Assembly (NCBI GenBank): GCA_904063045.1
Contig: CAJFCJ010000020.1
Span: 612,916 to 676,915, forward strand
Source of the DNA: Dimorphilus gyrociliatus
Taxonomy: Eukaryota > Animalia > Annelida
Direction: 5' to 3'
Length of the DNA stretch: 64,000 nucleotides
The notes below the pieces were generated by a model. That model was given only the letters and a program-made list of their open reading frames with translations. It ran no database searches and had not been told where the DNA came from. The position numbers and the translations under genes were made by a program. Position 1 is the first letter of the stretch, and the number at the start of each line of letters is the position of its first letter. Shown in pieces: positions 2,880 through 42,000 of this stretch.

Positions 2880-3437
2880 TCAAACGGCGAACTGACGTTG
2901 ATCGTAGTTGAAATTTACACTGTTAGTACCCTGAAAGTTTTGAGAAAATCTCTGATAGGTTTCCTCAGGCGTGGTGTACGCAGGATTATCGTAATTATCG
3001 TAATAGTTGTAATAATCGTAGAAACTGTCAACACCTGGTTCGTGATTGGCAAAAGTAGGATGCGTTGGTAAAGAATCATTGTCTTGCTTAAAATTTGGCG
3101 GAAGGTCTTGCAAATTATAGACATCTATACGATCCCATTTTCTTGATCGGCCTTCAATAGCATTTCTATCACGAACTGTCTCCTCACTTCTAATGGTCTC
3201 GTGAATTCTTTCGCTATATTCCTTGTTTTCTACCACAGATTCCGTTCCTTTTCTGGAGACGTTCTCGTAGATATTGTGATTTGTCTGGGTCTTGAGTACT
3301 TCTTCGTTTCCAATTTCCCTTTTCTTTTTCATTCGAAATTCGTTAATTATTAATAAAACAACTGCAATTATTATTCCAACGCCCGCTATGCCTAATATAG
3401 AGCCAAGAATAATATTCATTACCTTTACTGACACCAT
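2880..3437 (-). CDS. Orphan single-pass membrane protein (185 aa) with a Tyr-rich cytoplasmic tail
   Basis: Single ORF. Hydrophobic segment IILGSILGIAGVGIIIAVVLLII is followed by RMKKKR, then a hydrophilic tail with YENV and NPAY. Acceptor-like cagcag lies 7 nt upstream of the ATG. Confidence 0.6.
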   Translation of the reverse strand: MVSVKVMNIILGSILGIAGVGIIIAVVLLIINEFRMKKKREIGNEEVLKTQTNHNIYENVSRKGTESVVENKEYSERIHETIRSEETVRDRNAIEGRSRKWDRIDVYNLQDLPPNFKQDNDSLPTHPTFANHEPGVDSFYDYYNYYDNYDNPAYTTPEETYQRFSQNFQGTNSVNFNYDQRQFAV

Positions 3438-9194: not shown

Positions 9195-10062
9195 ATGTGT
9201 AAATGTTCAACGAAAGCGTTTCTCCTTCTATTCGGGACAATATTATGGGTAAGTTTAAAATGTTTTACGCTTTGTTATTCTTGGGCAATAACAAGTCACA
9301 AGGAGGTGACTCATCAATGTATTAAATTTATACTTTGCTAATGTTTTTAAACGTCTGTATTAAAATAATTTTCAACTTTTTCAGGCACTTGCCGCTGCTT
9401 TGATCTGGGTATCTGTCCAAATATTCGTTGAATACAGGAATATAGAGGAGCTTGGGAAAGCTTTATATATCCTTGTACCAACGGTTGTTCTCATTTTATG
9501 TGCAGTATTGTTCTTCGTTGTCGGCCTCTTGGGTTGTATTGGTAGTTGTAAGGAGCATAAATGTTTATTGGGAACCTTCTGTGTCTGCATAATTATAATC
9601 GCTGTTGGTCTCATTGTTTCGGCTTCATTGTCGTATCATTATCGTCACAAGGTTGAGAAATCTGCTTCAAAAGTATTGGAAAAAGGATTGAATCATTATA
9701 AAAACAACAGTATTTGGAGAAATGAAATTGATTTCATTCAAGAAAAATTCAAATGCTGTGGTGTTAATAACGCCACCGATTGGATTGATACACCTTGGGG
9801 TCATCACCATCCGATGGAACCTTATCCAAAATCTTGTTACAAAAATGAAACATCTGAATTGTATTTAAGGAAGGATGGTTGCGTACCAAAGGTTAAAAAT
9901 TTTGTTGTTAATCATCTCGATATAATTTTGGGAACAGCTTTCGGATTTTTGGGTTTACTTATTCTTGGCATAATAGCATCTTGCGTTCTGCTTTGCTGGA
10001 GAAAGAAGAGAGAAGAAGTTCCTTATGTTGGTTTAGCACCAGATGGAAGTCAACGTGTTTAG
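9195..10062 (+). CDS. Tetraspanin (CD63/TSPAN3-like)
   Basis: Exon 1 9195-9248 (MCKCSTKAFLLLFGTILW|gtaagt), exon 2 9385-10062. Four hydrophobic helices, GLLGCIG in TM2-3, and FKCCG plus PKSC in the large extracellular loop. Confidence 0.93.
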
Positions 10063-10238
10063 AAAAACTATCAGCCCACCCTCTTTTTCTGTGCAGCAAT
10101 TTCTGTGCTTTTAATTTAACTTGAATACTTTTTCACTGAAAACATTAAATAACAATAAAAATTAAAAAATTGCACTTTTTATTTCAATACATAAATTGAA
10201 TTTATTAAATTCTACATTGTGTATCCAAATATCAATTC

Positions 10239-11402
10239 TCAGTCCACGTCGTGTATACCTTCGACAGGAGGGCTTCGAACAGAACTTAAAAAAGAGTCAG
10301 CCCAGGCTTTTGTCAGTTCTAAATTTCCCCCATTTTCTTTTAGTAAATCCTTTTTACCGTGTTGACCTAAAATCATTTTTGCAGCGGCAATAACAACTTG
10401 AGAAGTCAAATCAGGCTGAGTTCTAAGCAAGTCTTTAACATATTGTCGAACCTTTGGTTCTAATTCTTGGAGACACGATGTTCGTCCTTTTTTACAAGAT
10501 GTTTCGTTATCTGAGGAATGTGAGAGGCAGCTAACGTAAAATTTCCTCATACTCCTGACTGTAGATTCGCCAATACGACAACCGAATTTTTCTTTATAAT
10601 GTCGAACTGTTTCCGCTACTCCATTCATCATGGCATATCTTCCTAGTTCCTCTCTTGTCTCTTTAGTATATGTTGTGTACATTCCTCTAGGTTTTCTTCT
10701 CTTTAATCTTTGATTTGTTGGTGTTGGTTTATTAGTATATAAGGACTGCGGCTTTGAGGCTACAGGATGTTTAATACGAGGAAGAACTTCTGAGAGACTA
10801 TTTTTCTTATTTTTTTTCACCGGTTTCACGGGTTCGGACGTTTCAACAGTTTCTTCATAACTTGAGAGAATTTTTTGAGAAATATTATTAAAAACATTAT
10901 TTAGGGCAGGTTCTGGATTTAAATGAGAGACTGGAATTGCAGCTTCACCATAGACTGGATCCGATGTTAAGGTATGAGGTTCGTCGTCGATAAAAGACGA
11001 TGTTGTTGCCAAATTCGGGTCGTCTGAACTTGATAATCGGCTTTTCTTCGACTCTTCAAAACCCTCGATTAAATGATTGACTTGTTCTGTTTTGACCGGT
11101 CTAGCCTTTCTTTTATTCTTACGACTAGGAGAGGTAGAACATGTAATAGCCGTTACGGTATCGTTTTGTTCCCCATATATATCTGTTTCACCCTCACTTA
11201 GAACAATATCTGGCTTCTTGATTGGTAAGAATTGAGATTGTAGGTTGACTAGGAATATTCTCTTTTGGTCTATTGTGACACCAATTAAGCCTTCAATTTG
11301 TAAATCACTCTTAAAGTTTAAATTATCGCAGCAAATATTAGATACAGCATCCATCAATTGGACTTTTATTTTGTCTAGATCGTCGCTAGTATTTAATTCC
11401 AT
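10239..11402 (-). CDS. Intronless 387-aa protein with a C-terminal pogo/Tigger-type (Brinker-like + CENP-B/Tc5 HTH) DNA-binding module and no DDE domain
   Basis: YTKETREELGRYAMMNGVAETVRHYKEKFGCRIGESTVRSMRK, then KKGRTSCLQELEPKVRQYV...SQVVIAAAKMIL...LLKENGGNLELTKAWADSFL. The ORF stops about 13 aa later. No terminal inverted repeats were seen. Confidence 0.7.
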   Translation of the reverse strand: MELNTSDDLDKIKVQLMDAVSNICCDNLNFKSDLQIEGLIGVTIDQKRIFLVNLQSQFLPIKKPDIVLSEGETDIYGEQNDTVTAITCSTSPSRKNKRKARPVKTEQVNHLIEGFEESKKSRLSSSDDPNLATTSSFIDDEPHTLTSDPVYGEAAIPVSHLNPEPALNNVFNNISQKILSSYEETVETSEPVKPVKKNKKNSLSEVLPRIKHPVASKPQSLYTNKPTPTNQRLKRRKPRGMYTTYTKETREELGRYAMMNGVAETVRHYKEKFGCRIGESTVRSMRKFYVSCLSHSSDNETSCKKGRTSCLQELEPKVRQYVKDLLRTQPDLTSQVVIAAAKMILGQHGKKDLLKENGGNLELTKAWADSFLSSVRSPPVEGIHDVD

Positions 11403-11642: not shown

Positions 11643-13962
11643 TTAAGTTTGAAAAGTGCTTAATTGTTCACTATTTGAATCTATTATTTGGGCGTATTGA
11701 GATGGATTATTAGCATCAACCAATATGTAACCTAAATGGGGCTGTTGCATAGACTGCGATTGAGGCTGCACGTTGTTTATGTCATTATTAACGACCGTAA
11801 AAAAGGTATCACCTGGTGCATAAGTATAGGCAATAGTTTGACTTTCTTCCAGCTTATTGGACTCTGGATGAATCCCTACTGATTTTGCTGCGTCTTGCAT
11901 TAAATAGACAAGACTACTGCTTTCAATTGTATCTTCTTCGGTTCTTTGTTCCTCTGATATTTCATTACTTTCATTAGAGTCTTGACCTGTGGTTATTTTT
12001 GTTACAAAAGATTAATAGAAAAGTCTTTATATTGCATTTTACCTCTATTTGTGTTCAATTCAACTTTATGAGTTTTTTTGAGATGACGATTCAAATGATC
12101 TTGTCTACCAAAAGTTTGCGGACAATATTGACATAAGAAATCTTTCTTTTTCGTATGAACAATTCTGTGCCTCTCTAAGTCTTTTTTGGAAAAAAACTTT
12201 TTAGAGCATACAGAACAATTGTGCTTTTTATCATTTTCAGAAAGTAGAGTTCTTGAACCTAAATGTTTCTTAAGATGATAATCAATTTCTTCTTTTGTTT
12301 CAAACTTCTTATTACAAACTAAACAAGTGAAATCTCCCTTGTCAGCAGCATGAACTGACATATGGGTTTTGTAGCACAAAGATGATTGATAAACTTTATT
12401 GCATTCTTCACATATAAATTGCTTCTTGTTGGGATCGTGCGTATTTAAATGGCTCCTTAGATGATCTCTTCTTGAAAACATCTATATATAAGCTAAGTAA
12501 ATATTAGATATTTACATAATAATTTGCACTAACTCTTGAACAATAAGGACAATTAATAGTCTTCTCTTTATGGTTTAAAGAATGCCTATCCAGCTTGAAC
12601 TTGCTGCTAAACGCTTTATCGCAGGTTGAACATCTGTTTGAAGGAAGAAATATAAAAATACAAAAATTTTTAATATCTATCTCTTCATTTAATCGTACTT
12701 AAAAGGTCTATCTCCCGTATGCATATTGATGTGCGCTGCTAATCTTGAGGATGTCACGAAAACTGCTTCACAATGTGGGCATTTATGCGTCTTTCTGTCA
12801 GCCCAAGTTTGCTTTTTGGCGTCTCGCTTCTTCCTCGTTTCATTCTTCTCACATACTTTACTTTGTTCCACTAAACAACTATCGGAAGTAGATTTTAAAA
12901 CAATTACTACTGCTTTGAAACTTATTTAACAACTAACTTATCTCCATCTTCCATAGAATTATTCATAGCTTGCATGTCTACAGTTTCTAATAGTCTTTTG
13001 TTAGCACTCTTAATTTCTTTTTTATCATCAAGAAAGGCCGCTGTACTCGATCTTTTATTAACCTCAGCTATATCAGAGCTAGAGTGAAGATCTTTTAAGG
13101 CGTCCATCACATGATCTTCCGACATTGAAGATCTTTTTCTACTAGCTACAAAATCGTAAAAATTTAAATTTTTATATTTAGTTGCCAACCAACTTACGTA
13201 ATGGTTTAACATTCATTAATTTAGAATAATTTTCTTCATACCAAACAAGCAATTCCTCATTAGGCTCAATTTCTTTCGTTGTCATGAAATAAATTTCCGA
13301 TTGACATTGATAGGCTACAATGTTTATATCCTCTGCGACTAGTGCCGACCTCAAATAAATCTCCCAACTACATTTATTAGGATCGTTAAGATATATAGTT
13401 GACGAAGATCCATCAAATTGAAATATCTATTTATTAAAAAAAATGTTCCAGATTAGTTAAATGCTTTAAAGAAAACGACTAAAGTTACTTTATAATATTT
13501 AATATGTGTATTATTTTGACTTTCAGAATTTGAACCTTCCAAAGGACCAAAAATTGTGTCTTTAGCAATTCTTTTCTTAGCTATAACTCCATTAGCTGGA
13601 AAAATATTGTTATCTTAGTAAATTTAATATTAATACACATTTTTCATAGATGAAATTACGTTCTGTATCCGACAATTCATCAAATTTTTTCAATTGAAGT
13701 ATAGAGGGTAGAGTCAACTTGGCTCGAGGAGGAAGTAGTTTATCTTTAATTCTGTGCAATATATGCTTCGTACATGGGTTTGTGTATCCTTTCTTACATA
13801 TAGGACACCCTAAAAGGATTTAATAGACACTTCTTTATGGATGAGCTGATTAAGAGACGTCAGAAAAATTAGAAAGATGAAAAAGAAACTTACAATGAAG
13901 AGTATGATCAAAAATCGGTGTTGAAGACGAATTGTCGGACGTACTTAAGGAAGATGGAAAAC
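11643..13962 (-). CDS. PR/SET-domain + PLAG-type C2H2 zinc-finger protein (5' end uncertain; candidate ATG at 14233)
   Basis: Zinc knuckle WCPICKKGYTNPCTKH. PR domain GVIAKKRIAKDTIFGPLEG...CSWEIYLRSA...NIVAYQ...IYFMTTKEIEPNEELLVWY. Fingers KAFSSKFKLDRH, MFSRRDHLRSHLNTHDPNK, HAADKGDFTCLVC and DFLCQYCPQTFGRQDHLNRHLKKTH closely follow PLAG1/PLAGL2. Stop at 11645-11643. Confidence 0.85.
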
Positions 13963-14867
13963 CTGTTAATAAATATGTAATTTAACTTTGTTTAACGGTT
14001 CTATCCTATATTTCGAATCCATCAGGGCGCGCTGTTATGGGGGCAAGTACAGGTAATACCTATTATAATATATCATTCTATCGACATTATATACAAATTT
14101 TATGGAATCTTATGATATGATATATGATTAATTACCTTGTATCATTATGTAACATATAATCTTACAAGCATAAAGTTGTTTTCAAGCAACTTGTATTAAC
14201 CAATTTCTCCAACGCAACCCAAACAGACGCCATTTCCTTTCATATAATGGAATACGAACCCGGTTATTGCCTATTGTATCACGTGACTAGTCTTCTGAAA
14301 GTTAATTTAACATCATTAATATTTTAGGAAAATTGACCATCTTAATGTTCATTATTTTGCCAATTCTGTTTTATAATTAGTCTTCTGGGAAATTTTTATA
14401 GTGAGTAATATTCATACAGAATAAAAAAATACCCCCAACATATACTTTTTAATAGAACGAAGAACAACTGATAGTTTACATTTAGTAAATATAATTCGAT
14501 AATTATGTAATGCAACAATATACAGGTATTTATGTTGATCATAATAATTTACTATCATCTATCCTATATGATTATTTATGTAATTCTGTTAAAACGTTGA
14601 ACTATAGTTGAAATATAAAAGAGCTAAATAATAATAAAAAAACCCCTTTCAGACTGATTACACCGTATGGTGTTTTCTTAAATTGCGGCTTTTAATTATG
14701 CACATTGAATGTTACACTTTTAAAAAACTGCCGATTTCCATTCAATTTTAAAAGGTGGCTGATACAGTATTGACTCGCTTGCGCTTTTCCATATGCTTTT
14801 TCTGTTCTATTCACCGATGTGACCTGTGAAATTCGCCAAGCGATCAATATAACGAAGAGTTTATAAA

Positions 14868-16085
14868 ATGATAAAGCACTATCTTAGGAGAATATCTTGC
14901 TTTGTAACGCTTTTATTTTGGATTCCTGTAATGACATATATTTTGTTAAAGTTTACAAGGAATAGCAAATCGAATAACTTTCAAATGAATGATATGAATA
15001 GTCAATTACTGAAGTATCAACGAGATGGAAGGCATAATTTAAATGTAGAGAAAGAATTTAGCTTATACAATTGCTCAGAGACTGATTTAAAACGCATTAA
15101 AAGAAATGGTATTGTGCAATATTCTTTAATTGAAGAAAAATGCGAGGAGTTAAGTAAATTTAGGAGATATTTGGCCTCCTTTCCGAAAGAGAAATCTGAC
15201 AGCGCCATTTACTACCTTGTTAAAACGGAGAGATCTGAAATGATGATTGATGGTTTGATTAATATTTATTCAAGGTTTAATAAGAAATTTAATTATCCAA
15301 TCATATTGTTTCATGAACAAAAACTATCACAGCAATTGAAAGATGAATTCAGAAATATCTGTCCAAAGTGTAATCTATTTTTTCAGCTTATAAACTTTAC
15401 CGTTCCAACGCAATATAAAAGGAATTTACCTTTGATCGATAAATTACTTGTAAAGGATGCTGGTAAAGGTCGGATTTGCTCTAGAGCAGAGGATGTTAAC
15501 TATAGAACGATGTGCAGATTTCAGTCTTTTCTTGTGTACGAAGAACCTATTCTAGATCATTTAGAATATATATGGCGTTTAGATGACGATTCTCGAATAC
15601 TTTCTGATATTAATTACGATGTGTTTAACTTTATGAGAGCAAAAAAATTACTTTATGGATGGACGGTGGTCACTCAGGATGAAGTTTTATGTGTTAAGAA
15701 TTTATGGGAAGCAGTAAATTTATATGTTGAGGTCAATCTTTTAAACCGTACATGTTTTTTTCACAAGTGGCCTTATCCTCTCATTTTTATGAATAACTTT
15801 GAAATAAGCTCCGTTTCTCTCTTTAAATCGGACAGCTATACAAAATTTATATCTTATCTTGATAATTTAGGGGGTATTTATAGGTATAGATGGGGTGATG
15901 CCCCAATAAAGACCATAGCTGTTAGTTTATTTGTCTCATTGAATCAAGTTCATTATTTTGAGGACATAGAATATAATCATGGAGGAATGAGGAATCCTCC
16001 AGATCCAAAGAGGGTGCAAATTAATTGGCAAATAGATCCAAAGAAGATATTTGACTTCAAGTTTAATCCAAAAAAACATTTTTAA
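14868..16085 (+). CDS. GT15 family alpha-1,2-mannosyltransferase-like protein (Kre2/Ktr/Mnt type), type II membrane, intronless
   Basis: 405-aa single ORF with an N-terminal anchor (CFVTLLFWIPVMTYILL). Motifs RFNKKFNYPIILF, YRTMCRF, YIWRLDDDS, DINYDVFNFM, NNFEIS and GGIYRYRWGDAP are characteristic of Glyco_transf_15. Confidence 0.88.
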   Translation: MIKHYLRRISCFVTLLFWIPVMTYILLKFTRNSKSNNFQMNDMNSQLLKYQRDGRHNLNVEKEFSLYNCSETDLKRIKRNGIVQYSLIEEKCEELSKFRRYLASFPKEKSDSAIYYLVKTERSEMMIDGLINIYSRFNKKFNYPIILFHEQKLSQQLKDEFRNICPKCNLFFQLINFTVPTQYKRNLPLIDKLLVKDAGKGRICSRAEDVNYRTMCRFQSFLVYEEPILDHLEYIWRLDDDSRILSDINYDVFNFMRAKKLLYGWTVVTQDEVLCVKNLWEAVNLYVEVNLLNRTCFFHKWPYPLIFMNNFEISSVSLFKSDSYTKFISYLDNLGGIYRYRWGDAPIKTIAVSLFVSLNQVHYFEDIEYNHGGMRNPPDPKRVQINWQIDPKKIFDFKFNPKKHF

Positions 16086-16485
16086 TCTCAGAATCGAAAG
16101 TTCTATTATTTCAAAACACTTTGTTATATTTTGGAAGTATGAAATATAATATAACATAACAATTGTTCCTTTAACTTTTACTTTTGTTTATTTTTAGAAA
16201 AAATATTGCATTCTTGTTTTGCAGTTACATTGTAGTATTTAATCTAAAATATTCTATTTTTTTATCACACAATCAATGTTTACATTGATATAAAGAAAAT
16301 AGTTCATATTTCTCTTGTTTTTCAAAAAATACTTCCACAAAGATATTTAATAGAGTATATAGTTTAAATTAGTTAATGAAAAGTCATAATAGCAATATTT
16401 CCATTCTTTTTTTTAACAACTATATTAACAATATAAGAAAGAGCCTAATAACAACCAACAAATATCACATGCATCCTATTGCTTA

Positions 16486-18897
16486 TTAGGACCAGCTAGT
16501 GTCATATTTGGTCCACGTTGAAGGGGGAGAAAAATATACTCGCTTTTTGTTTAGCAGAAAAGGAATAATTCCTCTATAACCCATACGAGGAACACCTGAC
16601 TGTTATTGATAATGAAAAGATAGACGATTAATTTATTTCATTATGAGTAAACAGTCAATAATCTTACCTTAAAATCGTCCATAATTCCCATTCTCTTTGC
16701 CAAAGACTTGAAATCATTTTTGGTTACATACTCAATACGAACCTCCTTATGACTGGGATTTGTATTCTTGAGCACATCATTGATGGATACCAGAGGCAAT
16801 TTGTATATCCCTTTTACCCATTCAGAATCGTATCGATCCTAACAGAAACGTCATAAGATATTATCAATCATTTTAATAATAAGGAAATAAATTAAAATCA
16901 CCTTAGTTAAATAACTTAAATCTAATTTTGTAAAAGGCACAAATTTGGTATTCATTTTTATAAATTTGAGATGTTTATCAAAGAATTGCCCTCTGAAAAA
17001 GAGAAATAGGAAAAGATTGACGCGCATGTCCAAGTTTCAATAGGAAAATATTGAGCCTACTTGCTAACTCCCTTCTTCCCATGAGGGGAAATTTCTGTAC
17101 GAGGAATTTCTGGCCGAATGCACTGGCGATCTCTCCGTTGATCCGGTTGTCGCAACCAATCATCCCAAAATCTACATGAAAGATAAAAAAATGATTGTTT
17201 AGCTACTCTAATATCTCCATAGGTTCTTTTTGGTAAGTCGGGTCGTTAAGCTTGTTTATCTTATTTATTGAGCTATTTTATCAATATCCATTTAAGACTA
17301 GCAACTACAAATAAATATCACGTTGCACTATGTTAAACAGTAGGAAATTTTAAAGTGTATATTTAAACTTCCTATAAGATATGTTTTAAATAAAGCTGCT
17401 AGTTCAGACAAGCAATAGTTGTGTGTGCATAGGATATGGAAAATTATTGCTATTCTATAAACAAAGCTAACTACAGCCATTTATAAAGAATATCTAATTT
17501 GCTGCTTTTTATTCACTCTGGCTGACTCCTATCTATAACCTATATTTAACTCCTGTCTTAATAAGGCAGCCAGCTGTGAAACGCCCGTAAAGTTATATGA
17601 AATATATTCTTGACGATCCATTCATACTAACCCTTTTGGCCATTTATCTCGTAACTCAGACCACAGATTACTTGTAATCATCCATCCGAGACCAGGAAAG
17701 AAATCAGTCCTATACAATTTTTCTAGAAAAGAATACATGTTCCTTAGTTAGATAATTTTTTCAGAACAAAAGATAAAGTTACCATTTTGCGAATTATCAA
17801 CCATTGACTCTTTACCATTATCGTTCCACGCAGAGACGCAGAAAAGACTTGGATCTTTCATAAGATAAGGGTAAAGAGCTTCCATATATTCGAAAAAGTC
17901 CTTAGCAAATACCAAGTCATCTTCCACTATTATTGCAGCTTTATAGCCTTTTATGTCAAAGACTTGAGTTAAAGCCCATTTGTAGTGACGTGATATTTTG
18001 TAATACCCCTGAAGGAAAAAAAGTTTTTTTCGAATATGTCGTCTAATGTTTAAGAAAAAACAAAATTACCTCTAGCTTTTTTTCTTTGGGCTTGAGATCT
18101 TTTATTGGTGACTGATCAGGTTGCTGAGTGAAATGTTTGATCTCGTTACCAAACGATCGAACAACATCTGCAGTTGGTTGATGCATGCAGTCTTGACTTA
18201 CAACAATAGGAAATCGACTACTGGACGGTCTGGTATCAATAAGATTCTTCAGAGATGCCCGTAAGGCTTCAGGTCGGTTACAGGCAATCATTAAGATTGG
18301 TATTTGAATTTCTGACCCTAAATTATCATTTATAGGCTCTCTTTTAAAAATATCTGCAAGAAGATAACAATTCATTTTATTTTTATTAAATAAATATCAG
18401 TTGCAAAAATTTACCCATTTTATTATTTCCCTCCAGTTCCATTTTTAAACCCTGTAGCTGTTTTAATAAATATTGGTTCCATTCTCCTTGGCTTGCGATT
18501 GCATCAGCTAGGTCTTTTAATTTTTCAGTCAATTGCACCTTTTCTTCAGGCTGAAGTACATTAGGCAGATACTTTCCTTGAGTCTGTTAGGTTATAAGTT
18601 GTCATGCACTAAGCTCATGCTTGTTAATACTATAAATCAGTTATTTTTAACAATTATTAACGATTATTTTTGTATATTATTTTACAAATTTTAGATAAAA
18701 AGCAAGGAAAAACAATACGTAATGATTTCAGACATTAATAAGCTAGGAAGAACCGAGCTGTAATCTCGTATGACGAGGAGATACACTAACGATTGGCATT
18801 TACTTACCCTGGGCCTCGTAAACAGGTATATATAAGCAATCACATTCCAAATCAGAAAAATGGCAATTAATGTAAAAGTAACATGCTTCCTTCTCAT
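16486..18897 (-). CDS. MGAT1: Alpha-1,3-mannosyl-glycoprotein 2-beta-N-acetylglucosaminyltransferase (GnT-I, GT13)
   Basis: Signal anchor [22 protein letters not shown]. Motifs [40 protein letters not shown]...[17 protein letters not shown] and the C-terminal WTKYDTSWS. Multi-exon. Confidence 0.95.
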
Positions 18898-19123
18898 TGC
18901 CAGTAGTCATGACACGTAAGTCAAATCCACTTCCAGGAGTTAATTTAGAATATCTGAATAAAATTAAAATTGGATAATTATTAATAAAACAATGCTAGAA
19001 TACAAAATGTCCAATGTTACAATGTTTATATGTTTACAAATATATCATTTTCTACAATAGAAAACTCGTATATTCGTAATTCTCTTATTTTGTCTGCTAA
19101 AAAACTGATGTTTAAAGTAAATG

Positions 19124-33088: not shown

Positions 33089-35213
33089 TTAAATTTTATT
33101 TGCAGCTTTTAGTTCGTCAAATCTTTCAACTTCTTTTAAAAAAGGTACTAAATGCGCTTCAACAATTTTATATGCAGGATCTTCGAAATCGTCTATTTCT
33201 TCATCATCTTTTGGATAAAGTATTGAATTTATGTTCTGTGCAATATCAGCTCTTCCACAGCCATTAAGACCTTCCATTAAATCATCTAGCTTAGCCCTTG
33301 TGTGATAGCGTCTCCAACGATTGAGAGCATAACGTGCCCTTTCGTCATTACCCTTTCTACTTTCTCTTTCTGTAAATTCTTCTATATCCCTATCCAACGT
33401 TAACCGACCTCTGGTGGGTGCAAAAGGTAAACTTCGATAAAGTTGAGGCCAATCCGTATTAATTGTCATACAAACAATATTGCAAGCTTTCTCAAAAGGA
33501 TCTGTCAAGAAGCGGATTTTAATTAGAATGATTAACGATATATTGTCATTGATACAAACCATCCTCGCTGCGTTTACCAGGTAACCTTGCGTAATTAACT
33601 TCGACTGGTTGTTGATGAAATATTTTGTTAATTGAATCTGGACATGTTTTGTATAAATAAATCTTCTTGGCTAATTCTAAAGAACCAATAACGTCGTGAT
33701 ATTCCAATTCATATTTAATTCTTTGTTCAATCATTTCCTCTAGTTCGTTATTTAATTGCTTACACAATTGTCTTTCGCTAAGTAGCGAGTCTCGTTTAGT
33801 TGTTATCCAATTCAACTTTAGATTGCAGCCAGCTATACTTCTTTTAACATCAGGTAGTTCGTGCTTAAGATCACGTAAATCTTTCGTCAGCTTATTGTAT
33901 TTTTCATAATATAAATTAGTGGGATATTCGTTTATTCGCTTAATTAACTCATCTCTTCGATACTCCTTTATTTCCATATTAATTTGTAGCCTGTTACTTT
34001 TATCCAAGAGAGTTTCAACATCAACAAGTAATTCATCTTCTTTCTCTACTAATTTTTCAACTTCTTCTTCTAGCTTTTCTAACTCATTAGCTACCTGGTT
34101 TTTACGATAATTAACCTGGTGATATCTGTGCTGGTGTTGACGAACTTCCTTAAGTAGCTCTTCCCTCTTCTCCTCGAGATCACTTATATCATTCTTAAGA
34201 AATTGGGAATAATTCTTATCCGTTTCTACCCAAGTTAACATTGCATCACAAGCTAATCGTAAATTTTCGCAAAGCGTAGGAAATAGAGCGAGAAAAGCAG
34301 CTTGAACAACGTCTAAACGCCTACATACTTCGATACCGTATTCTCCTAAGTCATAGACGAATAAACCTTCTGTTCTCCATTTATGCGATAAATATTCAAC
34401 TTTATCAACGTTTGTTTTAATTTTTGCTGACAATTCCTTTCTCTGAGTTTCGTAGGTCCTCGCAGTCTCAAGATTAATATCTTCTTCGAGTTCGTAAAAG
34501 CTCATACAATATTTATCTAAATATTTTAAAACTTTCTTTGTTTGCTTAACAATTTCAGAAAATTTGTCAGGAATAGAATCTCTAATTTTCCTATAACACT
34601 CTTTAAACTTATTAATAATTTTTGCGTCAACAGCAAATTTACGTTGAGGATCTTCACACCATTTAATTATTTCTTCAATTTGCCATACACGACTCAATTC
34701 GCTTAGTTCAGCCACTTTTGACATAGTATTAACACATTTGTTCCACTTGCGAATTTCATCAATATAAGTTTTACCATCATAAAATTGTTTCTCCGCCAAT
34801 TTAATGGACCTAATTATATTCGAAATTTGAGCAGATAATATTTTATGTATAGTCTGAAGGCTCTCTTGAGGTTTATTCTCTAAACGTCTAAGATCTAATC
34901 GACCAGTTCGGACAAAAAATGCCATTACAGAGGATGGCGGTTGTAGAGACGAGAAGGAGGAGGATGAGTAGGAGGAGGCAGATGGCGATAGGCTACTAGA
35001 TGATTCGTTGCTAATAAATAACAATTCCGGTATGGCTAAATTCTTTGCACTAGGGAAAAAGAGAGATAAATGAAGCGTGTTAAATAGAATAAGCTAGAAT
35101 TGTGTATAAAGTAAACAGAAGTTCTTTGTGTATTGTTTCTACAAATTCATATGCCTTATCGACTTTTACTGTTTTTTTTCTATTACCTCTCGACCAATTC
35201 CTTCTTCGTCCAT
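33089..35213 (-). CDS. Long coiled-coil protein with a C-terminal death-fold domain
   Basis: Three exons (ATG 35213 MDEEGIGREVIEKK|HAKNLAIPE...; ...SED|DPFEKAC...). About 250 aa of heptads, then DWPQLYRSL...DIEEF...ARYALNRWRR...AKLDDLMEGLNGCGRADIAQNI, a death-domain pattern. Confidence 0.75.
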
Positions 35214-36096: not shown

Positions 36097-39000
36097 TCAA
36101 ACGTCTGATATTCTTAAATATTCATCAATACTATGGCTTTTATCATGACGCCATTTAAGCTTATCCGTTGGATGGAATGCCGTTGAATTAACGTTAGATT
36201 CCTCTTCCGATATACTAAACGCTCTTCTAGGATCTATAATAAAGAAAAAAAAGAATTAAAGTATTAGTTTTTTGATCGTTAAATAAGAAAGAAAAACAAA
36301 GAAGAGTATAAATTCATAATAAAAGAAAAATAATGATTAAATAAATAATTCAAGATAACTTCTATATTTCTTTTGAAAAATCAATAAAGGAAACTTGAAA
36401 AAACTTAAAAGGAATAAAAAGTTTTTTGTTTGTTTGAAATGAAGAAGTTTTCAAGAAATTACATAAATAAAAATTCGTGCCAAAAAAAAAATATTCAACT
36501 ACACCGAAACATGAAAAAAAAAATCAAAAAAAAAATCAAGTCACAATCACGTGACAACACGCACTCATCAACCTCCAATTTCTCCTGCTGTCGATGCTAC
36601 CATAATAATCTCTCTTTCCGGTATATTTTGGATCTTTTTCTATAAGGTTAGAATTGTTGATTATTGCTTTTTATGACCAAAAATTATAAGAGAATCAATT
36701 ACCCCAGCTTTCTCTGTTCATGTTTTGAAGAGCTTCGATCTCAGCAATTAGACTCTTCCTCCTTCTCGTACTTCCAGATTCTTTCCTCCTAAGACGCTCA
36801 CTTAATTCGTCTTTTTCGCTTTGCAGTTGTCGAACGATCAAAGAGTGTTGAGCTTGCAATGATTCACTGTCTGCAGTAGCTTCTTCTTTATCCTGCGGCA
36901 TAAATATATACATTTATCTCGATATCACGGTTAAAATAAATTTTTAAGTCACTAACATGTAAAGCCTGTCGAAGCCGTATATGGAGAGATCGCTTTTCAT
37001 CTTTGATTCTTTCGATATCGGTTTCCTTTAGTTTCAAATCTAATGAGTGAAGTTGACAATCGGAAGACGCTGTTGTCACTTTCTTGCTGAGTACCTCTAT
37101 GTCGTGTTCCAATTTTAAATTTAATTCATCGTTTCTGAAAGAAGTCGAAAATTTATTATAGAAAAACTTGTTAAATACATTCTGATGCGCATTTTGTTCT
37201 GAAATAATTGTACCTTTCTAATAACTCTTCAACTTTTTCTTTCAATTCTGTAACAAGCTTAGCTTGCTTTTCTATTCTTTCTTCCATTTGTGCTTTTTCA
37301 AGATTCGATAGGCTTAGTTTATCGCCAACGCACTTAATTTCTTTCTGCATCAACTCCATATCTTCGTCGTGCTGTCTTTGTAATGACTGTATCTCTTCAG
37401 AGGACAACACCTTACGTTCTAAATCAGCATATTTCTTCCTTTCCATTTCTAATTCTTCTCGTTGTGCTTTCCTTAATGAGTCTAGAGCTGTAAGAAAGAA
37501 AAAACAATTAATTAGTAACAATAAAATCCCCAGCGTCATTACTACATTATAGGGTCTTTAGTAGACTCCGTATATGGAACGTGACATATGTGTAAGATGG
37601 TTTTTTAATACGTATTAAAGTGAGTAAAAAAGACACGATTACAGTACAACGTCGGAAAAACAAACCTGTAACTAAACCTCCGTCTATAAGCATATAAAAT
37701 AATCGAGAATATGAATGTTGACACTTGAAGGCTCTCATTTCAATATGTAACGCACTTATTTTTCAACGAGAACTAAAGCGTTACTTACCGGTTTGTGTTG
37801 CACGTACTTCTTCCTTTAATTCTTCTTCTCTCTCCAGCTTTAATTTTTGTAATTCCCTTTCATGAGTGACTTTCATCTCATTTATGATTTGTTCGTTTGT
37901 ACGCTCAATACACACCAATCCTCTGTCATATAATTCTTTCATTCTCTCCATTTCTTGCTTGTACTTTGACACTACCTTAGTTTCATCTTCAGGAGAATTT
38001 CGCATTAGTATACTCATACTTTGCCATTCCTCCTTGGCTTTGTTCATTAACCGCGTATGAGTTGCTTTTTCAACTGCCAAACGACGCTTATTGCTGTCAT
38101 ATGCATCTTGTAATTCACTTTCTAATTGATGAATTCGTGCTTGAACGGCGCTATCCTCTCGTCTACTTCCCATAAGTCTTTCCAATTCAACTTGAAACTT
38201 TTGCCTTTCTTCATCAATTTGTTTTTCATATCTGTCCCGTTCATTTTGCAGCAGCAAATCACTTTCAGCTTGTAAAGAACTAAATTCAATTTGGTAGCGA
38301 CTACTTTTTTCTTCTAAGGCTAATTGTAACTTCTCTACTCTATTTCGTAAATGCTCGATATCACTATCTCTTTCATTTTGTAATTTTTCCAAGTGAGCCT
38401 TACAAATAGCGTCTTCCGCCTCCATTTGTGCTACTCGAGCGTGAAGAACAGCCAATTGATTTTCTTTATCTTGTCGAATTTGTTCGAGAGCAAGATGGGC
38501 TCTATGCAATTCTTTTTCCATATTCTCAATCTCCGAATATAATTGTTGCCTATCGTCTTGCCGATATTCTACTTCCCGCTTCGTCTCAACCTCTTTACGA
38601 TCAGTGTATTTTGCTTTGAGTTCTTCCAATTTCGCAGCGTGCTCATATTTCAAAGTGTAAGCAACATAGGCCAATTGAGCATGGAAAACCGCCTCTCTTG
38701 CAACGATATCAGCGAGGTCATTACCAGATGCGGGCCTACACCTTTTTTGTAGAGAGTCTTCAACTTTGCCCAAGTCGGCTGCTAACTGGGCTAATCTGGA
38801 GGTTAACGAACAGCTCATCTCCATGCCGTCGGCACCAAAATGCTTTAGATAATTAGCCATACTGTCCTTCATAGCAGCATCCTGTTGCAGGGAATCAGCA
38901 ACAAGAGAGTCAATATGAGCTTTGTAGACATCAGGAGGCGAACTGGGTAAACCAGAATCAGTCCTATTAAACATGTGTAGTAATACTCTTTTTTCGAAGT

Positions 39001-42000
39001 GCTCATGCATATATGCTAGTTGACCAGATATGACCGCTTTCTTAGTGACAATATCAGCGAGTTCTTCGAGTAATGTATCGTCTGCCTCTTCAATAGTTTG
39101 TACATCGAAAAATGACTTGAAGTGTTGCATTGTTTGTTGGACTTCCTCAGCGAGAGCTTCATTTACATGCTTTGCTTTTTCTTCATTTTCGGGTAAAGAT
39201 AACGATGTTTCGGAAGCCTTTCTTTGAAGAACCGCTTGTACTTTGTTTTCCTTCGACACTTTGGCAACTTTAGCAACATTTTCATTCAAGTATTTTGTTA
39301 CTGCCTGTTCTAACGCTTTCTCGCGCTCTTCTAGTCTTTCCTTTGCTAACTTAAGTTCACTTTCTACCAAATCAATTCTTTCTCTATCATTAGAGCAGGT
39401 ACAAAGACCTCGTCTTAAATGAGAGACAGCAGCCGATAATTCGGCCTGAACAAGAGCTGATCTGGCTACCGGACACAAGCCTTCAATGTCTGTTTGTGAA
39501 CATCGGCTAACGGCTTCTGAAGCTAGGACATTACCGAGAGCATCACTCTCTATTTTTGTCTTTGGCACCTCCGTCTTTTGCATGGACAAGTATAATTCTG
39601 CCTGAAGTACCATCTTCTCTGCCAATAATTGTGCATAAGTAGATAGGGAATCATTTTTGGCCTTATCTATCTGATTTTTCTCCACTTGCATCTCTTCCAA
39701 TTTACACTCCAATTCTAATATTTGCGAATGAGCGTCCCGCATTTCGCTTAAATACATATCTCTTTCAGTCATTTGCTTGTTCGTCTGACTTCTAACAACA
39801 TATGCCATTTCCCCAACCACTATTGCTTCTATAGCCAATTTTTCAGCAAGGGCGTTTAATTTCAAAGTTTTAGTCCCATGATCGTCCATTTTATCGATCT
39901 TCGATTCTTTGTTATAAATTGAATCATACTCAACGGAATCAGTTACGAGTAAAGCATCTTTTAAACCATGAACAACATTTTCCAGAGTATTTTCACTCGC
40001 CCTACTGAAATCCAATGATTGTAAAGCACTAACAAGATCTTTTAATTTCTTTCTGGTCGAATCGATCATATCCAACGACAAGCGCAATTTTTTTCTAGCG
40101 TCTCGATATTGCTTCTCAGTCGCCTCAAGATTTGAAGTTTTATCCTCTGTGCTAATACTCTCTAAAACTCTCACTAAGCGATTATGCAAAACTTGTAATT
40201 GATCCGTTGAAGATGATTCTGATGTTGTTGAGCATGTATCAGAAATAAGGTCGTCGATTTCTGTATCATGTTCTTTATCATTTATACGTGGCGAATTATC
40301 GATACCCTGCGAACCATCAGGAGCTATTACAGCAACCTGCGGAGGAGGTCCAAGATTAATTGGAAGCGACATTTCCTCACTCTTTTCTTTTTCTTCTTCC
40401 TCTTGCTCATATGCATTAATGGAGAAAGTCTCCTCTAATACTTGCACTTGTTTGTCTATATCACTTAAAATTTGTAAATCAATAACTAGGCTCTCACGAC
40501 GTTTTTTTCTTTCGGTTACTGTTAATTTGTTAGTTAAATCCTCCACTCTGGCACACATAAGTCGTAGTTGTTCCTGATAGTCCTCATCGACTGATTCTAG
40601 TTGCTGCTTAATACCAGCATAAGCAATTTCAATCTTATCTAAAGAATCTTGAGTTTCGTTGCAACGTTTTCTTAAACGTTTTATTTCGCTTATTGCTCTC
40701 TCATATTTTCGTCGACTTTCTGCCGGATCATCTGCGTCACTTCCTTCGCTTTCTTTATTCACTTCTTTGAGATTCTCAATATTTCGCCTTGCTTCTCTGA
40801 GTTCATTGTCCTTACGAGTCATAGAAGTCTCAAAATCTTCTCGTAGTTTGCGCTTTTCTTCTTCAACTCGTTGTAGTTCACTTATTGCTTCTTTATATCT
40901 AGTTTCCATGCGGCTATTAATTTCCACGGACGATTTCATATTTGATAACTGCTTCGCAAGTGTTTCTTTTTCCTTCACAGTCTCCATTAATTCTTCATTC
41001 TTTGCATTTATCATTTCCATAACTTTTTCATTTTCTCTTTCTAATTCGGCCATTTCGGATTCGTATTTTCTAAATTCGACTTTGCTGGCATCATCGTCGT
41101 GCCTGGCGACAGCTTCTATCTCTTGATTTGCCTCTCGTAATTTTTCCTCCGATGTTGCCAATTCTTGTCGTATTTTCATACCTAGACAACGTTACATATA
41201 TAGTTATATATATATATATATATATATATACAGTATATGTATATAAATATTTGCAATTATATAATACAATATTGTTGAATTATATGGATGTAAGAAAATA
41301 TGTGTAATTTTACCTTCTTCCAGTTCATGTTCTAGTTGACTTCGCAAAACAGAACAATTTCTGTTAGACTCTCTTAAAGTATTCTCAGTATCTTCCAATC
41401 GATTTTGTAAATCAGCAATTTCTTTATTTTTCTCTTGGAGGAGTACATCCGATCTGTCCATAGGCGATTCATTGGCTTTTTTCTGCTTGGGGGCTTCAAG
41501 TTCTGCCTCGAGCGTTTGTAGTCTTTCTCTTAGTTGATCGTTTTCTTTCAATGCACTTTGGAACCTTTCCTGCTGGATTCGTAATGCTTGCTCTTTTGAT
41601 CGAATTTTTATTTGACATTGAGATAGCTCATCCGTAACGGCTCGAGCCTCAAGCATTGAATCTTGTAATTGACCTTCTAATTCGTCAACATCAAGCAATT
41701 TAGTTTGTAGGCTTTTTACACGATTTTTTGTCTCGTCTAATTCAACACTTTTTCTACGCAAGAAATCGTCTTTCTCAAAAAAGTCACGCTCTAATTGTTT
41801 TAATTTCATATCCTTTTCCGCGTTTTTATCTTGTTCCTTTCTCAAATCAGAACGAAACTGATCAATTTGTCGTTCAGCGGAAACCAGACGTTGAGCACAA
41901 GCGTCTAACTGACGCCTGTAATTTTTCGCCTCATCGGCGTGGCGTGTGGCCGTTTGTTCTGTTGCAGCAACCTGTTCGCTGAGTCTAGACATCTGCTTTG

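Follow-up and report, generated by a model that had tools for sequence, protein, structure and literature searches.

A stretch of 64,000 nucleotides from the annelid Dimorphilus gyrociliatus (contig CAJFCJ010000020.1, positions 612,916 to 676,915 of the forward strand; hereafter the window, with positions counted from its first letter) carries a gene for a bona fide member of the CAZy family GT15, which corresponds to Pfam PF01793 (Glyco_transf_15). We regard this gene as a functional, transcribed and long-resident host gene of the annelid under purifying selection, and its product as a member of an animal GT15 clade, known so far from spiralians, that is distinct from the fungal Kre2/Ktr/Mnt enzymes. 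In our estimate, the probability that this explanation is correct as a whole is about 0.8. The point of interest is that a family treated as fungal includes a separate clade which annelids conserve and express under purifying selection, and which has relatives in a brachiopod.

The family itself is known, and its animal subclade is visible in the databases, yet the subclade is undescribed and uncharacterised. A comparative study identified PF01793 genes only in fungi (PMC5225481), and one GT15 gene appears in the CAZy count of a snail genome (PMC10295696). Our literature search found no paper characterising or discussing an animal GT15 protein. The GT15 proteins of Lingula bear names such as 'glycolipid 2-alpha-mannosyltransferase-like' and 'omh1', which come from automatic RefSeq annotation as mannosyltransferases.

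A GT15 gene resident in an annelid genome

The open reading frame (ORF) at 14868..16085 starts with ATG, is intact and encodes 405 aa. An in-frame TAA at 14850, 18 nt upstream of the ATG, means that no longer N-terminus is possible in that exon. The profile check suggested in an earlier note on this DNA gave a clear result: the protein matches PF01793 over residues 89-371 with an E-value of 7.2e-47 and 160.8 bits (the gathering score being 25 bits), and the match spans profile positions 31-323 of 325. In a PDB sequence search only GT15 structures were matched, namely Ktr4p (5a07), Kre2p/Mnt1p (1s4n) and CmsA/Ktr4 (7boo), with E-values of 2e-35 to 2e-34. The ORF, its type II anchor and the three motifs that the earlier note had read from the sequence are present as described: YRTMCRF (residues 212-218, written there as YRxMCRF), NNFEI (309-313) and RWGDAP (341-346). 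The same note had seen WRLDDDS (236-242) in place of fungal WRVEP(D), and this is borne out by the alignment with 1s4n, in which WRLDDDS is paired with WRVEPDIK of Kre2p, and by the motif census described below.

Judged from its sequence, the protein would have type II topology, since the basic KHYLRR is followed by 21 hydrophobic residues (9-29) and a stem (36-65). An AlphaFold2 model built from a 47-sequence alignment has a mean predicted local distance difference test score (pLDDT) of 89.8, exceeding 90 over most of the catalytic domain, and a predicted template-modelling score (pTM) of 0.82. It comprises a long N-terminal helix (residues 2-35), a poorly ordered, low-confidence stem (36-65) and a GT-A domain. 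In a Foldseek search, the top 11 matches are all GT15 structures (7boo, 1s4n/1s4o and 5a07/5a08; E-values 1e-25 to 1e-22; template-modelling scores by target 0.63-0.76). Beyond GT15, the GT8-like XXYLT1 follows at 6e-09, and then come weaker GT8-type and UGGT domains.

Public sequencing runs were compared with positions 13200-19100 of the window. Two of them, X2 and X3, belong to two studies with two organism labels and are recorded as 'DNA?' and '?', respectively. We treat their contigs as transcript assemblies because they skip segments of 55-460 nt in three adjacent genes and the joints have strand-consistent GT..AG or CT..AC borders. The whole coding sequence (CDS) of the GT15 gene runs uninterrupted through X2 record 4 (14456-16091) and X3 record 8 (14650-16599). 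The gene is transcribed, with spliced transcript contigs in the runs of both studies, and the evidence consists of assembled contigs, which carry no level, strand or ends.

The gene also keeps its place in a relative. At locus L001, whose GT15 protein (P0002) is 71% identical to that of the window, the order tetraspanin / 387-aa ORF / zinc-finger gene / GT15 / GNT-I is the same as here, and a third species has a GT15 protein (P0003) that is 66% identical. A hydrophobic N-terminus equivalent to the anchor is kept in both relatives (L003, and L001, where it is encoded from an in-frame Met that precedes the called start) as well as in Owenia and Lingula. Between the GT15 orthologues of the two relatives, the ratio of nonsynonymous to synonymous substitution rates (dN/dS) is 0.07. 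Between the window and the relatives, the proportion of nonsynonymous differences (pN) is 0.18-0.21 and that of synonymous differences (pS) is 0.76, which is saturated. A recent insertion is excluded by the synteny with the relative, the conservation of the anchor, the saturated synonymous sites and the low dN/dS. A pseudogene was also considered and is ruled out by the intact ORF, the intact catalytic residues, the expression and the same dN/dS. The database copy of the protein is located on a 1.8-Mb contig, and the GC content of the gene region (0.31) equals that of the surrounding 2-kb bins. The earlier note held that the gene does not look like a contaminant, and the host-like base composition, the synteny and the splicing all support that view.

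The animal GT15 clade

In a motif census over 162 retrieved GT15 homologues, the named fungal proteins all carry W-R-[VIL]-E-P-x. The E-P pair is present in 27/27 named fungal matches, and likewise in 6/6 fungal rows of our group-wise residue table. About 80 unnamed sequences have W-R-L-D-D-[DE], as do the window protein and its relatives and Lingula anatina. A search seeded with the Lingula protein P0071 gained two Owenia fusiformis proteins and a third Lingula paralogue. The two proteins from Owenia (P0138 and P0144) and the three from Lingula (P0071, P0137 and P0072) all have the DDD motif and a hydrophobic anchor at the N-terminus. The WRLDDD clade also takes in many environmental sequences with an anchor. 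The roughly 50 unnamed DDD-type relatives lie on contigs of up to 2 Mb on which ORFs are sparse and microsatellites and genes for reverse transcriptase occur, contexts that look like large eukaryotic genomes. One eukaryote-like contig of 2 Mb (L008) contains two single-exon DDD-type GT15 genes, at 10001-11173 on the plus strand and 15558-16703 on the minus strand, an inverted pair 4.4 kb apart that represents a local duplication in another organism.

The Lingula and Owenia proteins share WRLDDD, FHE, NNFEI and the anchor with the window protein, to which they are 29-34% identical, and show no shared synteny with it. Both of their genes that were checked (P0071 and P0138) have a single-exon CDS. 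A long branch (1.2 substitutions per site) leads to the dinophilids, which have features of their own: a lineage-specific insert at about residues 190-203 (LIDKLLVKDAGKGR) and a Met at position 308, where the clade usually has Tyr. In comparison, the fungal enzymes Kre2p/Mnt1p (1s4n-1s4p), Ktr4p (5a07), Candida albicans Mnt1 and Aspergillus fumigatus CmsA/Ktr4 (7boo) have the family, the GT-A fold and the layout of type II anchor, stem and catalytic domain in common with the window protein, but only 24-30% identity. They have Glu247-Pro-Asp where the window protein has Asp239-Asp-Asp. What defines the fungal Kre2/Ktr/Mnt subfamily (the E-P motif, a Cys-His loop together with Trp325 and disulfides, and a branching position within fungi) is absent from the window protein. 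The animal clade is marked by an N-terminal anchor, by WRLDDD and not E-P-x, by 'FHE' and not 'LND' at the base-binding strand, and by the lack of the Cys-His acceptor loop.

Two phylogenetic trees were computed. In a quick tree of 99 rows, the DDD clade includes 59 rows with a support of 96 by the Shimodaira-Hasegawa-like approximate likelihood ratio test (SH-aLRT), the fungi have 100, and the animals join the fungi with 81. A careful maximum-likelihood (ML) tree of 51 rows was restricted to named taxa and to representatives of the prokaryote-type and IMG/VR sequences. In this tree the animals (dinophilids, Owenia and Lingula) are monophyletic (97/94), the fungi form an exclusive group (100/100) with the window protein outside it, and animals and fungi are sisters (87/68), the prokaryote-type and IMG/VR sequences lying outside both. 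When the dinophilids are forced to group with the fungi, the tree is 10 log-likelihood units (lnL) worse, with p 0.037 in the approximately unbiased (AU) test. Because paralogues from Owenia and Lingula are intermixed (Owenia P0144 groups with Lingula P0072), the tree suggests at least one GT15 duplication older than the annelid-brachiopod split. By this phylogeny, the common ancestor of annelids and brachiopods, at the latest, already had a GT15 gene.

These results change the picture given in the earlier note, which had called the protein fungal-type and had offered either an ancient horizontal acquisition or a patchily retained family as its origin. The label 'fungal-type' cannot be kept for a protein that falls outside the exclusive fungal clade and has WRLDDD, not W-R-x-E-P. 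Nor does an acquisition specific to this lineage agree with homologues in Owenia and Lingula, a single animal clade and synteny in a dinophilid relative. As far as the sequences allow one to judge, the GT15 gene is neither fungal-type nor acquired by this worm lineage. In a tree that includes no identified holozoan outgroups, inheritance within Metazoa is largely supported, and the option of a patchily retained family fits the data. The sister position of animals and fungi in the ML tree agrees with vertical inheritance in opisthokonts and numerous losses.

GT15 (PF01793) also occurs outside eukaryotes. Scans of other collections found PF01793 proteins on 122 IMG/VR contigs, and prokaryotic records include an archaeal single-amplified genome, a Verrucomicrobiales metagenome-assembled genome (MAG; L091, on a 281-kb contig), Natronomonas aquatica (L092, on a 171-kb contig) and a Ca. 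Methanoperedens MAG (P0153/L097), in which the neighbours of the GT15 gene are unmistakably archaeal. The prokaryote-type and IMG/VR proteins have 250-465 aa, no anchor and the motif WRLD[ST]D, and their genes lie in densely packed clusters for glycan biosynthesis, next to genes for GDP-mannose 4,6-dehydratase, GT11, GT2 and FkbM methyltransferases. In common with the window protein (about 30-35% identity) these proteins have PF01793, the DxD, FHE, the short acceptor loop and the catalytic residues. They differ from it in their length, 250-320 aa in this comparison, in having no anchor or stem, in their surface-glycan gene clusters and in their position outside the animal clade. The Ca. Methanoperedens protein is 39% identical to Lingula P0071. 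In the Verrucomicrobiales MAG the GT15 protein carries a fused methyltransferase domain, and its gene is followed by another GT15 ORF with a weak match.

Predicted activity and alternative explanations

Residue roles described for CaMnt1 and ScKre2 (PMC11077754) were transferred to the window protein through the 1s4n alignment and the residue table. The catalytic Tyr220 of ScKre2 corresponds to Y212, Arg245 to R237 and the metal ligand His388 to H371. Among the donor-mannose contacts, Asn327, Asp361 and Ala362 correspond to N310, D344 and A345, and Arg358 (R341) and Glu329 (E312) are conserved as well. The Mn ligand Glu247 is replaced conservatively by Asp239, and an Asp stands there in every animal and prokaryote-type sequence. 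The catalytic and donor site of a GT15 enzyme is thus represented by Y212, R237, D239, N310, D344 and H371. CaMnt1 lacks a DxD (PMC11077754), and the Candida enzyme has been presented as an antifungal target (PMC11077754).

With the catalytic and donor residues conserved and the acceptor residues changed, we infer a retaining GDP-sugar transferase that depends on Mn and most probably uses GDP-mannose, with a diverged, non-fungal acceptor site. The GDP-mannose 4,6-dehydratase and GT11 genes beside the prokaryote-type relatives provide a GDP-sugar context. The enzyme would be a type II membrane protein, presumably of the Golgi, with a lumenal GT-A domain. Asp239 and His371 would hold Mn2+ with the diphosphate of the GDP-sugar, Arg237, Asn310, Asp344 and Ala345 would hold the donor hexose, and Tyr212 may stabilise an oxocarbenium-like transition state, so that the sugar would be transferred with retention. 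The sugar would most likely be mannose and the linkage alpha-1,2; the acceptor would be a lumenal glycan, probably different from the fungal acceptors. The uncharacterised mannosylation activity proposed in the earlier note can thus be carried over as probably an uncharacterised glycosylation activity, with mannose as its presumed sugar. If the enzyme is active, alpha-mannose (or other GDP-sugar) extensions are predicted in spiralian glycans, and the route of GDP-mannose to the Golgi lumen becomes a question in spiralians. For glycobiology, it seems worthwhile to study an animal GT15 clade that has a canonical DxD.

Several points weigh against the explanation preferred here. Golgi import of GDP-mannose is not known in mammals and is not established in model animals, so that the annelid would have to possess a transporter for it. 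Support for animals and fungi as sisters is moderate (87/68), and a grouping of the animals with the archaeal-type sequences is not rejected by the AU test (p 0.42). Two base or phosphate contacts differ (Asn160/Asp161 are His149/Glu150, and Arg130 is Lys119), the fungal loop of about 8 residues with Cys322/His323, which contacts the acceptor O6, is absent, Trp325 is replaced by Met308 (Tyr in most of the clade) and Tyr214 by Cys204, and the protein lacks the disulfide cysteines of fungi, with no cysteine aligned to Cys254 or Cys322. Finally, GT15 also includes the mannosylphosphate transferase Mnn6 (PMC5225481).

Four other explanations have to be weighed against a long-resident member of an animal GT15 clade, and two of them can be dismissed with some confidence. 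That fungal, protist or microbial DNA was mis-joined to the animal assembly is hardly credible: apart from the fungal reputation of the family nothing speaks for it, and it would have to account for host-like GC content, for spliced animal genes a few hundred bases away on both sides, for a transcript contig that extends into a shared upstream exon, for introns in the 5' untranslated region (5'-UTR) that are sized like those of the neighbours, for a gene order repeated in an independently sequenced relative, and for the presence of the stretch in runs of two studies. Very improbable, too, is horizontal acquisition of a fungal Kre2/Ktr gene by this animal lineage. GT15 is best known from fungi, PF01793 has been reported only there (PMC5225481), and the intron-free CDS does stand amid intron-rich neighbours. 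Against this, the fungi are exclusive (100/100) and the worm sequences fall with those of Owenia and Lingula (97/94), the constraint that joins the dinophilids to the fungi is 10 lnL worse, identity is 24-30% to fungi as opposed to 32-39% to animal-clade and prokaryote-type sequences, the protein has neither the E-P motif nor the Cys-His loop and disulfide cysteines of fungi, and the gene is syntenic in relatives at saturated synonymous divergence. The intron-free CDS is no evidence of recent transfer, because Lingula P0071 and Owenia P0138 have it as well. More generally, an intron-free coding sequence of a mainly fungal family in an animal genome is by itself no evidence of horizontal transfer. 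A transfer more ancient than this lineage deserves closer consideration, although we regard it as a tentative possibility. The animal DDD clade could descend from a single GT15 gene, without anchor or introns, that passed from an archaeon, a bacterium or a large virus into an early animal or spiralian before the annelid-brachiopod split, the anchor and the 5'-UTR introns being added later and fungal GT15 having an independent history. This would agree with the intron-free CDS in 3/3 animal genes checked (the window, Lingula P0071 and Owenia P0138), with all unnamed DDD-type members being called as single ORFs, with the DxD, FHE and short acceptor loop that animals share with the prokaryote-type proteins and not with fungi, and with the location of the Ca. 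Methanoperedens gene in a genuine archaeal glycan cluster. The constraint that unites animals with the archaeal-type group costs 0.55 lnL, and no vertebrate or insect GT15 appeared among the homologue lists, whose underlying searches were not exhaustive. On the other side, the ML tree joins animals to fungi, as the quick tree does, the shared motifs may be ancestral states in view of the long fungal branch (1.5-1.6), and an intron-free CDS is weak evidence.

The remaining explanation accepts a real GT15 enzyme in the animal clade and gives it another activity, namely transfer of mannose-1-phosphate (as by Mnn6/Ktr6), use of another GDP-sugar such as GDP-fucose, or another mannose linkage. We do not favour it, but it is conceivable. 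Residues on the acceptor side and two contacts to base or phosphate are not those of Kre2/Mnt1, the family includes Mnn6, the prokaryote-type relatives adjoin GDP-mannose 4,6-dehydratase and GT11 fucosyltransferase genes, and the animal Golgi imports GDP-fucose. It is opposed by the donor-mannose contacts of CaMnt1, all of which (the equivalents of R234, N316, D350, A351 and Y209) are identical in the window protein. Combining the ancient transfer with mannose as the sugar leads to a bolder idea that we consider unlikely: a spiralian branch of Golgi mannosylation, of a kind thought to be fungal, carried by an animal GT15 clade with a true DxD and founded by an ancient archaeal, bacterial or large-virus transfer. 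Were it true, alpha-mannoside extensions would be expected on worm, brachiopod and mollusc glycoproteins, and an animal Golgi GDP-mannose supply would be required of a kind not known in model animals.

Transcript structure and neighbourhood

The features of the locus are given in Table 1. The earlier note had described the gene as intronless, which is correct for the coding sequence and incorrect for the mRNA. Since two GT..AG introns (14401-14455 and 14526-14652) lie upstream of the CDS, the GT15 mRNA is spliced and only its coding sequence is intron-free. The lengths of the two introns (55 and 127 nt) are within the size range of the introns in neighbouring genes (55-460 nt), whose multiple short introns, pointed out in the same note, are confirmed. 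Together with the high gene density and the run dates of 2017/2020, such very short introns agree with the published D. gyrociliatus genome (PMC7854359). The second 5'-UTR intron is removed in X3 and retained in X2, in which the contig is continuous from 14456 to 16091. The leader, in its retained or adjacent part, has at least one upstream ATG (14667). A joint in another run, X6, that skips 399 nt inside the CDS (14874->15274) was rejected as an intron, with AG..AA borders and one side of 21 nt. We judged the match to be foreign or due to chance; X6 contains 2% of the words sampled.

Table 1. Features of the GT15 locus and its neighbours in the window
Feature	Position	Strand	Evidence
GT15 CDS, single exon, 405 aa plus stop	14868..16085	+	ORF list; Pfam PF01793; gap-free transcript-contig cover
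Predicted type II signal-anchor, residues 9-29 ISCFVTLLFWIPVMTYILLKF, basic KHYLRR before it	14892..14954	+	Sequence reading; AlphaFold2 helix; conservation
GT-A catalytic domain, about residues 89-378	15132..16001	+	Pfam envelope 89-371; AlphaFold2; Foldseek
Asp239-Asp240-Asp241, canonical DxD	15582..15590	+	1s4n alignment; group-wise residue table; motif census; roles from PMC11077754
5'-UTR exon 1, 3' part	14360..14400	+	X2 record 4, 41 nt upstream of joint
5'-UTR intron 1, 55 nt, GTGAGT..AG	14401..14455	+	Joint 14400->14456 in X2 and X3
5'-UTR exon 2	14456..14525	+	Bounded by the two contig joints
5'-UTR intron 2, 127 nt, GT..AG	14526..14652	+	X3 joint 14522->14650 (cut +3)
5'-UTR part of coding exon	14653..14867	+	Joint at 14650/14653; AG 14651-14652; in-frame TAA 14850
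PRDM-like gene, PR domain plus C2H2 fingers, head-to-head with GT15	12005..14400	-	CT..AC joints; Pfam PRDM2_PR and zf-C2H2
GNT-I family gene, MGAT1-sized, tail-to-tail with GT15	16170..18955	-	CT..AC joints; Pfam GNT-I on three exons
Tetraspanin	9400..10062	+	Pfam on exon-sized ORF
387-aa ORF	10239..11402	-	ORF; conserved and syntenic in L001

Both immediate neighbours, the PRDM-like gene with several short introns and the GNT-I gene with at least 8, lie within about 100-500 nt of the GT15 gene. X3 record 8 links minus-strand exons of the PRDM-like gene to the plus-strand 5'-UTR exons of GT15 through 14134-14400, and this bridge could reflect divergent first exons that overlap, or a promoter active in both directions. 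On the other side, less than 100 nt separate the GT15 stop from the end of the GNT-I transcript contig (16086-16170), and one assembled contig spans both genes. The adjacency of GT15 and GNT-I is kept in the relative L001; it may be due to chance or to co-regulation of two Golgi glycosyltransferases.

Three longer ORFs of the window, at 37781-41179 (1132 aa), 33546-35024 (492 aa) and 10239-11402 (387 aa), all on the minus strand, have no Pfam match at E <=1e-3. Exon-sized ORFs elsewhere in the window match the nuclear-receptor domain zf-C4 (26978-28153, plus strand) and, weakly, syndecan (2880-3437, minus strand). Together with the tetraspanin, these are ordinary animal genes and confirm the metazoan context.

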